A DNA stretch of 64,000 bases from the NCBI GenBank assembly GCA_965644295.1, contig CBFFRP010000363.1, positions 124,001 to 188,000 of the forward strand, written 5' to 3'. Both the position numbers and the translations under genes were made by a program. This DNA comes from Paraphysomonas bandaiensis. Lineage: Eukaryota > Protista > Chrysophyceae. Below are positions 44,764 to 49,592 of the stretch, piece by piece. The notes below the pieces were generated by a model. The model had not been told where the DNA came from and did no database searches. It saw nothing but the letters and a program-made list of their open reading frames with translations. How positions within the stretch are numbered: the first letter of the stretch is position 1; the number at the start of each line of letters is the position of its first letter.

Positions 44764-46069
44764 TAAGCTTTCTTACTAAGTTCAACTACAAATTATGTTG
44801 TTATCTAACCTTACCAGGAAAGTACAAAGTAATAACAGACCTATAATAAAGAATAATGATAAAATATTTATGATATGCAAGTCTGGAAATTGTACTGGAT
44901 AATTCCGGGGTTTATATCCATTTTATAAAGCGTGTTGCTGAATTATCTAGTGATTTTATATTCAGTTTGACTTCATTCTGTATATACATATGTGTTTGTG
45001 CATAAGTTGCATAAATTGCAATGCATTACTGAATGTATCTACCCATATACATTGATGATGAATTATCCTCATCAACTATAATTTGACTAGTGTGTTGATA
45101 TGGAAAATGAGTTAAGTCCGTCCATGTAGTCAAAATACTATTTATTAGCAAGTAGTAGTACATACGTTTATTCATATTAACTGTTACTATAGTGGAGGAA
45201 TCTAAGCAGATTCGTATGATAGAGCTCAGGCCTATCTCATTGGTAGGCTCGAGACAATCATGCTAGAGGAATACAGTGGCTAAAGAACAAGAGTCAGAGT
45301 GATAGCAAAGATTACAACCTATTATCACGTTGTTAGGTAGCCCACCATATATAATAATGCGAGACTTAAATTTTGCAATATATGTATATTTTAGAATTCT
45401 ACATTTTATGCTTGGGTTTTGAAATCTTGCATATAAACCTTATCAGTTAGCAATACCATATGATTTTAATTTGTACAACTTCAAGCTTGGTTTTTGTCAG
45501 GTTTACTGTTGATTGCGGTAAAAAGAATTTTATAGTATGAAAACCGAATGTCATGATATTTTAGTGACAATTGGGTGTTGGTTCTGCTTGTATGATAATA
45601 CTGTATTGATACCGACTGGGGTTGCCATGATTAAATATTAATTTGAGCATATTACAGTGGTTGATTCACCTCAGTAAACCTAGTGTCCCATATCGGATAT
45701 CTTACCCAGTAACTGTTTGCATATTTTATTGGGACAACCGGGACATCAAAATCTAAAACTGAAAAATCGCACCCTTTGGATCTTGGGCCATTAATTCACC
45801 GTTTCAGTCCGTCACTTCCTCTGCTGCCCTCTGTGTGGGTTTCGTTACATGTACAGAGTGTGTGTGTATGTATGTATGTATCATACTGCTGTGTACAATA
45901 ACTGTATATGGTAACTGTACGTGTATGTTACATGAGGAGAATAACTTCCACAGATCTCATATCTGTATTTGGAATTATTTGACCGACAGCTGCTATCTTA
46001 ACTTCCAGTGAAGCTGGGTAGAGTATACAGATCTTCAGTGTGTTCATGATATGGTGATAGAAGAATCGA

Positions 46070-48832
46070 ATGCCTAATGCAGTAGTTCCAGTGAGCAACG
46101 AATCCGTAAGTATACGATGATTAGTAGGGAGCTGTTTGAATGATATATTTGTGTCATATCTCACAGATGCAGGCATTACAAGTCGAACACCCCAATCAGT
46201 ATGAGCGGCCGAAGCGCCACCGCAAATCTCTTAAGAAGAGAGTGTTTGAAGTCATGGATTCTGTGCCGATGCAGTTATTTCTTGGGTTGCTTTTGATATT
46301 GTCACTGTTCCTTCCCGATATATGGATATTATGTAATGCGTCGTCAGAATCAGACGAAGCTCTGTACTCCATATTACTTGTCGTATTCATAATTTTCATA
46401 TTCGAAACTGTAATCCTGACTGCTGTTCAAGATGATTACTTCTTGAGCTTCTTCTTCTGGATGGATTTTATCGGGACGCTATCAATTATTCTTGACATTG
46501 GATGGATAGCAGACTCCTTCATGCCTGACAACACTGATGCTACTCAGAAAGGGTCACTTCTCAGGGCCGCAAGGGCAGCAAAGCTTGGGGCTCGTTACGG
46601 TCGTTTGATGAGGCTATTGAAGCTGATGCGTTTTTTCAAGTTTCTTCCATGCTTTAAGCAAGAAGAAGATGTAGAACCAGAACCTACTATGTCTGCTGTG
46701 CGAAAAGTTTCCTCTGAATTGTCATCAGTCCTCTCCCGTCGTGTGGCAGCCCTTGTGATGCTTATCGTCATAGTAGTTCCTTTCCTAGACTATAATATTG
46801 TTGACAAAAGTGTGGATGCTTGGCTGACTAACTTTAGGAGAGTGGCCTATTCCAACACGACAACCACTGATGACTTAGACAGTATGGCGAGGAAGTTTCG
46901 TCGTTTTTACCATACCGAAGCTCTCACTCCATTGCAGCTTACTGTAGAAACTGCACACTTGCCTCTATTCAACGAGCATTATTCTCAGGGGTACAAGCTT
47001 CGAAATGACAATAAGATTCTGTACGAAATGAGTTTCCTCGACAACGACGAAAAGTACTGGGTACGCGTTAAGATGAATAACACCGTCATCCGCCAGTGGG
47101 ATGCCTTTTTTGGGATAATGCTTATTATTCTAGTTATTGTAGTGCTTGTTGGGTTCTCTGCCTCGTTTCAGAATTCCGTGGATGTGCTAGTAGTGGTACC
47201 GCTGGAGAAAATGATGAATACCTTGCGACGTAGCGCAACTGCTATGTTAAAAAGCATGCAGGCTATGGACAAGGAGGATGAAGAAAACATGATGGGTGAA
47301 AATAGTGATTTGGACCAGGAGCTAGAGACTGCTGTACTCGAAAAGATGGTAGAGAAATGTAAGACAATTTGATGTCATTTTATGATTTCTAATGTTTGTG
47401 CAGTGGCCAGAATTGTGAAACACGTCACCAATGACAATGACCTGGTGGTGGATGAGAATGTAGATAGTGCCGTGGCTAGCTGGCTTACTCAGAACTACGC
47501 TGGTAATGCAACGAAAAAGCGTGACGTGATTGTAAAGGACCATCCGGACTTGTCAGACGAAGAACAACAGAACAAACTCAGGGATCTTCATAAAAGTGTA
47601 GACCCCAAAGTTGTCAATAGCTGGAACTTTGATGTACTGAAGTACGACTACGAACAACTTTTTGAATATAACCGATACTTGTTCGATGTTTTCAACGTGT
47701 TCGCTCAGTTTGACATTCCGGTTGCTGTGATGGACGCTTTCATGCACGAGTTGTCGGTCCGGTACATTAAGGACAACACGTACCACAACTTTCATCATGC
47801 ATGTGATGTGACACAAACCACCTACCGCCTGATCATGGTTTCCAAGGTGCATATCGCGCTTAGCGATTTGGAAGCATTTTCTATGCTTGTAGCAGCAATG
47901 GGCCATGATGTGGGGCACCCTGGTGTCAATAACGCCTTCTTGGTGAAGACCCGCCACGACCTGGCTATGATACATAATGACAAGTCCCCGCTCGAGAATA
48001 TGCACTGCTCCTTGTTGTATGAGCTCTTCCGTAAGCCGGAATTTAACATAATGGCGGGGCTACCAGATTGTCAATGGCGGGAGTCTAGAAAGATCATCTT
48101 ATCGCTAATCCTCGGGACGGATATGGCGCATCATTTTGATCAAGTGTCAAAAACCCAGGTAAATTTTGAGTGAATTCTTAATCTTATGTTTGTTTAATTG
48201 TCTGGTCATGCAGCTGTTTCTTGAAGTCAACGGTGAGGATGTGAAAAAGTTCTGCTACGGGCATACTGATACAATTGAGTGTTTCGGCGAAGAAAAGAAT
48301 AGAATTTTTATTATGGAGCTGTTTTTACACTGCGCTGACATTTCAAACCCGTACAAGCCATTTGACATATGCGCACAGTGGGCAGACTTGGTATCACAGG
48401 AGTTTTTTTCTCAGGGAGATAAGGAAAGAGCCGGTGGGATGGATGTTTCGCCAATGATGGACAGGGATACATCTAACCTGTTTAATATGCAAATGGGTTT
48501 TATTGAGTTTGTAGTGTCGCCCCTGATTAACAGTAAGTGCCACTTCTCTTGCTGCTTGCTGACGGTCCTGATAATTATTCGTAGCTGTGGTGACACTTTT
48601 CCCACCGTTGAAGGAGACAGGAGAGATGATGCTCTCGAACTACATTCTGTGGGGTGAGAAGCGCAAGGACGAAATTCGCGGAACTGCCGACATGGCTGCT
48701 GAAAAGAAGGACGAAGAAATCAAGAAGGTGGACGACCGTATCAGTAAATTTAAGGACAAAATGGCTTTTCTTAGCAACATTGTTGAGGCAAGAAGAAAGC
48801 ACTCCTCCGGAAGTCTGGCCTCTAACAAGTAG
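46070..48832 (+). CDS. Class I 3',5'-cyclic nucleotide phosphodiesterase fused to an N-terminal voltage-sensor-like 6TM module
   Basis: S1-S4 with FIIFIFE (S2), FFWMDFI (S3) and RAARAAKLGARYGRLMRLLKLMR (S4); two further TMs; a HAMP-like helical linker; PDE motifs YHNFHHACDV, HDVGHPGVNNAFL, NDKSPLENMH, ILGTDMAHH, HCADISNP, EFFSQGD and QMGFIEFVV. All four introns keep the frame. Confidence 0.92.
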
Positions 48833-49592
48833 ATAGTAGATATAGGGGAGATACTAAGGATTCACAGAATCTTTGTAGCAACAGCTATCGTCTTTCTGTC
48901 ATTGGATGTTTGGTTATCGCATATGTAAAGACTGACTTGATTTGTCAGCGGTCTAACCCATGCTTGTGACAGTGTTTTTATTTATCATGCCAAAATTCAG
49001 TAAAACCTATCATGAGAAAAAGAGTAATTTAATGACTGGTGTTGTGTGTATTTTTCAAATTATCTCGTGAGGTTGATGCACAGTAATTACCACTGTAATA
49101 TCTAATGCCTTCAATGAGTGCGTGGTGCTCCTTAGAAAACATTACCCGTAATACAACTCATGGCTACCATTATCCGAAACTGACATTTGGACGATAGAAA
49201 TTGGGAAATATAATTCAACCTAGTCAATTCGGTGTGACTAGAGGTAATTCAAGCAATTTGACTAAGTTGAATAATAGATCCCATAGAAAGTAATCAACAG
49301 ACCATCATTACTCATTACACTATACTATAATCATTTACCAGATAATATTCTTAAATTTTATGTTTCTAGTTATATTTAACCACGGGCAATAAGGAGGCTA
49401 TATCGTCCCGCGCTATACTCCTTATCCCTAGGTTAAATTGTAGCTTATCCTCATGACGTTGAAAAGTTAATATTACATTGTATAGCTATTTGTAGCATGC
49501 TTGCTGTATAAAGAAATAGATGTTCCCTGATTAACATTAAGAACACAAAATGAAACTCATATAGTTTCAAATCAATGATATGTATACTGTAA

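Follow-up and report, generated by a model that had tools for sequence, protein, structure and literature searches.

Can membrane voltage act directly on an enzyme that breaks down cyclic AMP (cAMP) or cyclic GMP (cGMP)? This question is raised by a gene of the chrysophyte Paraphysomonas bandaiensis that lies at positions 46070-48832, on the + strand, of a 64,000-nucleotide (nt) stretch of genomic DNA (assembly GCA_965644295.1, contig CBFFRP010000363.1, positions 124,001 to 188,000; hereafter 'the window'). An initial annotation, made from the DNA letters alone, had proposed that the gene encodes a voltage-sensing phosphodiesterase (PDE), in which an S1-S4 voltage-sensor domain (VSD) and two further transmembrane (TM) helices are fused to an intact class I PDE. 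By published accounts, the phosphoinositide phosphatase VSP (voltage-sensing phosphatase) is the sole enzyme shown to be directly driven by an S4 sensor; by the same accounts, the protist cyclase that carries a voltage sensor is still unproven, and the sperm Na+/H+ exchanger (sNHE) counts as a transporter. Here we describe the transcript, predicted structure and relatives of the P. bandaiensis protein, which we call VSD-PDE, and weigh how far they argue for control of hydrolysis by membrane potential.

The membrane module and the phosphodiesterase sit on one mRNA

The VSD-PDE gene has five exons, and its 2550-nt spliced frame of 849 codons specifies a product of 849 amino acids (aa). All four introns, of 61, 45, 55 and 52 nt, have GT..AG borders, and stops lie in frame just 5′ of the start ATG (Table 1). 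Evidence for splicing comes from assembled contigs rather than raw reads, with RNA-derived contigs contributed by three studies. Run X1 contains a single 2694-nt contig over 46007-48913 from which all four introns have been removed. The joints in run X2 are identical to those in X1, with coverage up to 49036, and the same joints occur in X5, a poly(A) RNA-Seq run of a marine metatranscriptome with coverage from 45990, where introns 2 and 3 are both bridged by a 1598-nt contig (46811-48508). The genomic counterpart is seen in DNA run X18, in which one contig carries the unspliced form of the gene. The initial annotation had described a single spliced open reading frame (ORF) with a critical intron at about 47358-47403; these data place that intron at 47359-47403, and the joint 47358>47404 is bridged in X1, X2 and X5, flanked on either side by 255 nt or more. 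Because the introns are removed in RNA-derived contigs of three studies, we conclude that the TM module and the PDE sit on one mRNA.

The layout of the gene could also have arisen as an annotation artefact, in which neighbouring genes for a membrane protein and a PDE had been wrongly joined: in the DNA the TM and PDE parts occupy different ORFs with a stop-containing 45-nt gap between them, and several database relatives are TM-only fragments. However, the bridged junction speaks directly against this, as do at least 90 fused relatives and a transcript ORF from MMETSP (P0166, described as 'complete') that is likewise 849 aa long and 98.8% identical to the window protein over its full length. 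We reject the two-gene reading, which is almost certainly wrong. P0166 differs from the window protein by 10 substitutions, all after residue 591, and served as its proxy in the full-length fold and dimer models; elsewhere, in-frame exon pieces of the window protein itself were used. One member of the 90% cluster of P0166 carries the label MMETSP1103 (taxon 36769, Paraphysomonas, whose flagellate cells are colourless).

The N-terminal half is predicted to contain a voltage sensor

The 397-aa product of exon 2 was folded with AlphaFold2 (AF2) from an alignment, A1, of 98 homologous modules (pLDDT 82, pTM 0.73; pLDDT ~90 across S1-S3). The model consists of an amphipathic S0 helix, S1 (aa 45-67), S2 (72-99), S3 (107-130) and S4 (137-169), with a short acidic, proline-rich link between S4 and TM5. 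The motifs F89-x-x-E92 in S2 and W110-x-D112 in S3, which the initial annotation had taken as marks of a voltage-sensor fold, are present. The basic residues of S4 are K140, R145, R148, K151, R155, R158, R161, K164 and R167; across aa 140-167 they recur at every third position except for one four-residue step from K151 to R155, so that the earlier description of a basic residue at about every third position was accurate.

Structural comparison by VIA, which was exhaustive against 48,161 PDB representatives, gave as the best match of the exon-2 model the VSD of Ci-VSP (4g7v_S; Z 12.5, root-mean-square deviation 3.5 Å, 131/136 residues). The rows that follow (~30) are nearly all VSDs, aligned to model residues ~18-158, and include the sensors of Nav1.7, Kv4.2, NavEh, Kv1.2, Kv2.1, KCNQ4, TPC3, KvAP and SLC9C1. 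The A1 profile searched against all PDB sequences matched only VSDs of Cav and Nav channels (E 1e-4 to 3e-3). Foldseek with the multi-domain model returned no match against the PDB at E<=0.001, its top rows being VSDs at weak E-values. A match to Pfam Ion_trans (PF00520) is precomputed for some relatives.

Conservation of the sensor signature is close to complete among PDE-linked modules, despite a mean column identity of only 22-25%. In 105 non-redundant modules of this kind, F89 is kept in 99%, an acidic residue at E92 in 100%, D112 in 99% and D122 in 99%, and the S4 positions are basic at R145 in 98%, R148 in 97%, K151, R155 and R158 in 100%, R161 in 99%, K164 in 98% and R167 in 91%. F89, E92 and D112 are kept at 99-100% in PDE-linked modules and in modules linked to cyclases (described below) alike. 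We conclude that the N-terminus is, as modelled, an S1-S4 voltage-sensor fold with its charge-transfer centre intact and its S4 conserved.

A folded ecto-domain and long helices lie between sensor and enzyme

The predicted topology is N-in with six TM helices, with a basic N-terminal cluster inside and the sequons at N69, N242 and N316 all in predicted outside segments. Two TM helices around a loop of about 105 aa, with no GYG filter, had been proposed to follow the sensor. The two helices and the missing filter stand, whereas the 'loop' does not: the ~98-aa segment between TM5 and TM6 folds with high confidence in the exon-2 model as an alpha/beta ecto-domain. Residues D225, F259 and R291 in this domain are near-invariant in 85 full-length relatives. 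No Pfam family matched aa 215-325, and the weak likeness of the domain to the Cache/PDC sensors 3li8_A and 5wbf_A is at noise level (Z 7.9). ACalpha has a GxG loop after S6. The motifs G[YFLIM]G and TxGxG occur nowhere in the 849-aa VSD-PDE, bearing out the earlier remark that the GFG motif of ACalpha is absent.

TM6 proper (aa 318-345) is modelled as part of a continuous helix that runs to ~387, and the second linker helix, 'ELETAVLEKMVEK', which spans intron 2, has near-invariant residues at E399, L403, E404 and K409. The two linker motifs, the 'VVPLEKMM' helix and ET..LE..(V/I)EK, are common to a cyclase paralogue. The suggestion that the first of these helices forms a HAMP-like segment fared poorly. 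Pfam HAMP (PF00672) gave no match at E<=10 over aa 325-440, and, where a HAMP would show a helix-connector-helix, the model after TM6 shows one continuous helix (aa 318-386) and then a second helix. We reject membership of the HAMP family; the likeness is limited to a conserved Pro after TM6 and a shape match to bacterial HAMP-kinases.

With their flanking helices, TM5, the ecto-domain and TM6 have a predicted shape like that of the TM/periplasmic-domain/TM/HAMP units of bacterial histidine-kinase sensors. The match in topology and predicted shape extends to bacterial two-TM sensor kinases and chemoreceptors, but there is no detectable sequence homology with them, and VSD-PDE differs in being eukaryotic, in having a VSD in front and a PDE as its output, and in lacking a Pfam HAMP. 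The predicted fold of the segment between S5 and S6, and the likeness of the TM5/ecto-domain/TM6/helix unit to a bacterial two-TM sensor, make it possible that the ecto-domain receives a second input from outside the cell.

The phosphodiesterase is PDE4-like and probably dimeric

PDEase_I (PF00233) matched the products of exons 3 and 4 with 155.9 and 101.1 bits (E 1.9e-45 and 1.1e-28; cut-off 24.8), and the closest solved structure is that of human PDE4A/D (E 7e-55). The domain has an HNFHH motif and two HD motifs, and the clamp Gln and the later His/Asp ligands are kept. H537, H541, D544, H577, D578, H581, D649, H653, H700, D703 and Q754 are invariant in the 85 full-length relatives and align to their PDE4 counterparts, which upholds the claim that all metal-binding residues are present. 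In the full-length model of P0166, pLDDT exceeds 90 over the PDE domain. Judged by its sequence, the domain is PDE4-like with all catalytic residues in place; as to substrate, the likeness to PDE4 hints at cAMP and does no more than hint.

A homodimer model of aa 330-825 of P0166 scored 0.64 against 0.00 for the best control. Among proteins solved as same-chain pairs, 21 of 30 attained the mark for this score, whereas none of 23 solved as single chains did. Dimer runs share at least 43% of their contacts, with a partner pLDDT of at least 76 and an interface at aa 593-646 in the PDE domain; the pass may mirror memory of solved PDE dimers.

VSD-PDE is a sister of the voltage-sensor cyclases

The genome (62.5 Mb in 669 contigs) was searched for paralogues. 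At two loci, on contigs C342 and C295, the output behind a homologous S3-S4/TM5/ecto-domain/TM6/helix module is a class III cyclase, and a tail of TPR-like type is present as well; these modules match that of VSD-PDE at E 4e-16 and 28-30% identity. A complete cyclase transcript, P0252, encodes 839 aa with PF00211 and PF26726, and its relatives, labelled 'class 3 adenylate cyclase', number in the hundreds, for example in Symbiodinium, Ectocarpus and Thalassiosira. A Pfam scan of the window protein found no PF00211, its output domain being PF00233.

The initial annotation had noted a resemblance of the membrane module to that of the channel-like cyclases of Paramecium and Plasmodium. The resemblance is clear for the cyclases of the same genome, and residues 15-391 are matched, at a TM-score of 0.73, by an Atlas cluster that is dominated by ciliates and consists of proteins with a guanylate-cyclase domain, which supports the proposed link to Paramecium, Tetrahymena and Plasmodium; the comparison with the Paramecium and Plasmodium enzymes themselves is indirect. 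The voltage-sensor adenylyl/guanylyl cyclases of ciliates, apicomplexans and stramenopiles, among them the Paramecium/Tetrahymena adenylyl cyclase, Plasmodium ACalpha and Phytophthora PPTG_13136, have a module homologous to that of VSD-PDE over its entire length, from S1-S4 to TM6, and share with it the 'P..(K/R)MM' and 'ET..LE..(V/I)EK' helices and PF26726. They differ in output: VSD-PDE has a class I PDE for hydrolysis, whereas in the cyclases a class III catalytic domain, with a TPR-like tail, serves synthesis. The Paramecium VSD-cyclase is credited with hyperpolarisation-linked cAMP formation (PMC10651576), and a Phytophthora VSD-cyclase is located at a flagellum (PMC12223298).

The initial annotation had also proposed that the enzyme arose by a swap of catalytic domains. 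In a FastTree phylogeny of 146 module sequences, a single branch splits PDE-linked from cyclase-linked forms with a Shimodaira-Hasegawa (SH)-like support of 99, and the same single-branch split is found in an IQ-TREE LG+C20 phylogeny of 66 module sequences (SH-aLRT 99). None of 500 label shuffles matched the observed split in either tree. Both trees are unrooted, and their sequences were collected with one query per group. Because a single branch separates the two forms, the trees fit one ancient exchange of the output domain, after which module and output would have been inherited together, in agreement with the proposed swap. We conclude that the window protein is, by these trees, best placed as a member of a sister family of the ACalpha-type voltage-sensor cyclases and not as one of them.

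A large and widespread protist family

A HMMER search with the membrane module, exhaustive over 1.84 billion cluster representatives, returned 2169 proteins at E<=1e-3, of which 907 were at E<=1e-10. Among the best 150 of the 2169 representatives, 90 join the module to a PDE (typically 800-1300 aa) and five join it to a class III cyclase, the remainder being short fragments. About 100 full-length relatives of P0003 have precomputed matches to PF00233 and PF26726, a few of them also to PF00520. PF26726, named 'Helical_RasGEFs' in Pfam 38.1, has a precomputed match in P0166 and in nearly all relatives that, going by the Atlas rows, covers roughly the ecto-domain, TM6 and the next helix. Named sources of the family include Ochromonadaceae sp. 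CCMP2298 and Ochromonas danica, and the commonest labelled phyla in the Atlas clusters are Perkinsozoa, Chlorophyta and Bacillariophyta, a taxonomic range that rests on few labelled members. We conclude that VSD-PDE belongs to a large, widespread protist family that is already in databases and partly annotated there, as PF26726 plus PF00233.

A second copy of VSD-PDE in the same genome (L002, C357:115102-119289) has an exon layout identical to that of the window gene. The two copies are ~81% identical in nucleotides but 92-95% identical in amino acids, with a non-synonymous divergence (dN) of 0.04 and saturated synonymous divergence (dS), which precludes a numeric omega; because of this pattern, both halves of the protein are judged to be under strong purifying selection. 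VSD-PDE (window and C357) and the VSD-cyclase (C342 and C295) are thus each present as a diverged pair of copies on different contigs, a pattern that points to haplotypes of great divergence, to a hybrid genome or to a whole-genome duplication long ago. At least six more PDE loci occur in the genome, on C164, C284, C285, C147, C78 and C15, in which no copy of the VSD-PDE membrane module was detected; one of these six lies in a 2293-aa open frame.

Some relatives depart from the usual pattern. A 751-aa family member encoded on a 42.6-kb contig (P0228, RYH32743.1) bears the NCBI label '[archaeon]' as part of a metagenome-assembled genome; this is most likely a eukaryotic contig in the wrong bin. 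Three giant relatives of 2245-2345 aa (P0085, P0087 and P0123) have the module and PDE at the C-terminus and ~1400 extra N-terminal residues with weak cyclase-like matches, and may be bifunctional cyclase-sensor-PDE proteins. In Euplotes genomes, PDEase_I and Ion_trans genes are described as 'always adjacent' across subgroups (PMC8670190); these may be split models of the same fusion family.

Does membrane voltage control hydrolysis?

VSD-PDE is best explained as a six-TM membrane PDE arranged, from its cytoplasmic N-terminus, as S1-S4, TM5, an ecto-domain of ~100 aa, TM6 with its long helix, a second helix, a PDE4-like domain and a C-terminal helix, and we propose that it would act as a dimer. 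The highly charged S4 would move with membrane potential, its movement would be relayed through TM5/TM6 and the helices continuous with TM6 to the catalytic domains, and in this way the speed at which cAMP or cGMP is hydrolysed would depend on membrane voltage; a second, extracellular input from a ligand may come in through the ecto-domain. Together, VSD-PDE and the VSD-cyclases of the same cell would make cyclic-nucleotide levels rise and fall in response to electrical signals, with flagellar control, by analogy, as the probable setting. The path that couples S4 to the PDE is conjecture. For the central step, that membrane voltage regulates hydrolysis by VSD-PDE, we infer chances that are evenly balanced. 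The most far-reaching form of the proposal falls slightly short of that: VSD-PDE would be a true voltage-regulated PDE and the first enzyme in which membrane potential directly controls the breakdown of a second messenger, paired with a homologous VSD-cyclase, acting without Ca2+ or G proteins and maybe integrating a ligand. After VSP, it would add a second class to the voltage-sensor enzymes, one that is common across stramenopiles, alveolates and green algae.

Several observations weigh against control by voltage. Unlike in Ci-VSP, sensor and enzyme are separated by TM5, the ecto-domain, TM6 and ~170 linker residues. Within the linker, aa 386-452 are of low confidence in the P0166 model, and the confident contacts of the dimer model are confined to the catalytic domain, with none in the linker helices. 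As to the structural match to VSDs, VIA cautions that Z below ~13 for helical bundles may come from common packing. Of the two Pfam families that the initial annotation expected, PDEase_I lies well above its cut-off and Ion_trans, with 24.7 bits on S1-S4 (E 1.6e-5), just under its cut-off of 25, a score that also counts in favour of the voltage-sensor fold. A recombinant protist VSD-cyclase has never been shown to be voltage-regulated (PMC10651576). Finally, the conservation of the ecto-domain raises the prospect of a ligand as the main input.

This last point leads to a different reading, in which VSD-PDE is a receptor-type PDE: the enzyme would be under the control of a ligand or ion bound outside the cell by the TM5/ecto-domain/TM6/helix unit, and the VSD would only modulate or stabilise the protein. 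The ecto-domain has a high-confidence fold, the near-invariant residues described above and conserved sequons, together with its flanks it aligns to sensor/HAMP modules of bacterial histidine kinases, it shows a weak alignment to Cache/PDC domains, and TM6 is the helix that leads straight to the enzyme. However, a receptor of this kind leaves unexplained why eight S4 charges and a charge-transfer centre have been kept at 91-100% over deep divergence, and the ecto-domain has no Pfam family, nor do its structural matches rise above the noise; we consider a receptor-type PDE unlikely. If the membrane module were just an anchor, it would bring a PDE that is constitutively active to the plasma membrane or to that of the flagellum; such a role would have precedent, in that N-terminal TM helices whose regulatory role is unknown occur in many protist PDEs and in human PDE3 (PMC10865986). 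Conserved arginines in S4, a charge-transfer centre in S2 and S3, a folded ecto-domain and conserved linker helices would all be superfluous in an anchor, though, and an anchor would not call for a dN as low as 0.04 with dS saturated. We regard a mere anchor as improbable.

We give similarly little credence to a channel-enzyme, in which the six-TM module would conduct ions, through an oligomeric TM5/TM6 pore or in an Hv1-like manner through the sensor, with the PDE regulated by the flux or regulating it. A K+ conductance has been proposed for a related ciliate cyclase, at least as Weber 2004 and Schultz 1992 are cited in PMC10651576, and the Ion_trans part of TgPDE4 from Toxoplasma gondii was called 'channel-like' by its authors (PMC7720076). 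Yet the protein has no P-loop and no GxG or TxGxG motif, the S5-S6 segment is predicted to be an alpha/beta ecto-domain, and both kinds of output, PDE and class III cyclase, form dimers (the PDE according to the dimer model) rather than tetramers. We reject a voltage-gated cation channel, as filter motif and P-loop are both absent. A proton channel like Hv1 is disfavoured by the lack of a conserved Hv1-type acidic residue in mid-S1 and by an S4 with eight charges, and F89 occupies the hydrophobic plug position.

VSD-PDE among known sensor-enzyme proteins

Voltage control of a PDE would make VSD-PDE a variation on the voltage-sensor-enzyme theme, which it is in architecture, and not a new category. 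In Ci-VSP/TPTE, a voltage-sensing phosphatase, a VSD is likewise coupled to a cytoplasmic enzyme and not to a pore. The enzyme of Ci-VSP, a phosphoinositide phosphatase similar to PTEN, follows directly on S4, whereas the output of VSD-PDE, a PDE that is probably dimeric, is set apart from S4 by two extra TM helices, an ecto-domain and long helices. The choanoflagellate rhodopsin-PDE (RhoPDE) resembles VSD-PDE in that a helical linker connects a membrane sensor with a class I PDE, which is dimeric, so that a physical stimulus lowers cAMP/cGMP (PMC8774190, PMC7590022). However, its sensor is an 8-TM retinal-binding rhodopsin and its stimulus is light; the membrane parts of the two proteins are not homologous.

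Also comparable are TgPDE4 and TgPDE16 of T. gondii, PDEs with a partial Pfam Ion_trans match among their TM helices (PMC7720076, PMC8809380). Going by these descriptions, both may belong to the same family as VSD-PDE. The partial match was noted for TgPDE4 (PMC7720076) and for TgPDE4 and TgPDE16 (PMC8809380), with speculation about ion transport; many substitutions have been reported in the catalytic region of TgPDE4, and the two proteins are known for a domain match and not as voltage sensors. A 2023 review of voltage-sensor proteins covers channels, Hv1, VSP, sNHE and the protist cyclase and never mentions a phosphodiesterase, and a 2025 Phytophthora paper terms the VSD-cyclases a novel family, with PDEs unmentioned. 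In the literature outside subscription journals, a search for papers on PF26726 or on a phosphodiesterase described as voltage-sensing, voltage-gated or voltage-dependent came back empty. The initial annotation knew of no characterised example; in the literature searched this holds, the domain-level remarks on TgPDE4 and TgPDE16 and the papers on VSD-cyclases being all that was found.

If membrane voltage does control VSD-PDE, the voltage sensor would be a portable input for second-messenger enzymes, and protists would gain a direct electrical off-switch for cAMP/cGMP, one that would probably serve flagellar steering and feeding in abundant marine grazers. The same architecture could account for the unexplained TM regions of certain drug-target PDEs in parasites, and it would provide a genetically encoded tool that lowers cyclic nucleotides by voltage, for which the family offers hundreds of natural variants.

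Features of the locus and its surroundings

Table 1 Features of the VSD-PDE gene, with positions in the window
Feature	Position	Strand	Details
Transcribed region (mRNA)	46007..48913	+	One spliced RNA-derived contig, run X1, 2694 nt, five pieces
Two short upstream ORFs (uORFs) in the 5′ untranslated region	46046..46077	+	ATG 46046, 3 codons; ATG 46051, 8 codons; inside transcript
Exon 1, coding, aa 1-12	46070..46105	+	Joint 46105>46167 in X1, X2, X5
Exon 2, coding, aa 13-409 plus 1 nt; entire membrane module and first linker helix	46167..47358	+	
Voltage-sensor domain S1-S4, aa 45-169	46263..46637	+	Predicted, model me218d78c7fec; S2 F89/E92, S3 D112/D122
S4, aa 137-169	46539..46637	+	9 K/R, zero acidic residues
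TM5 with preceding amphipathic turn, aa 187-219	46689..46787	+	Predicted models
Ecto-domain, aa 220-317	46788..47081	+	Predicted: two helices and four-stranded sheet; two N-x-T sequons
TM6 into one long cytoplasmic helix, aa 318-387	47082..47291	+	Invariant P357 in 'VVPLEKMM'
Second conserved linker helix 'ELETAVLEKMVEKLARIV', aa 396-417	47316..47426	+	Split by intron 2
Exon 3, coding, aa 410-661; linker and first PDE half	47404..48158	+	
Class I PDE catalytic domain, aa ~521-800	47736..48682	+	Pfam match 47781-48528; contains introns 3 and 4
Exon 4, coding, aa 662-767; second PDE half	48214..48532	+	
Exon 5, coding, aa 768-849 plus stop; end of PDE fold and charged C-terminal helix	48585..48832	+	

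The second of the two uORFs overlaps the main ATG out of frame, and the pair may exert translational control. Upstream, ~180 nt before the transcript start, lies a (TG)n/(TATG)n microsatellite (45851-45887). Just 3′ of the gene, at 49252-49500, the depth of X18 DNA rises from ~98x to 11,663-57,400x, and RNA-derived contigs also heap up there with many loose ends; this segment is a very high-copy repeat or the end of a mobile element.

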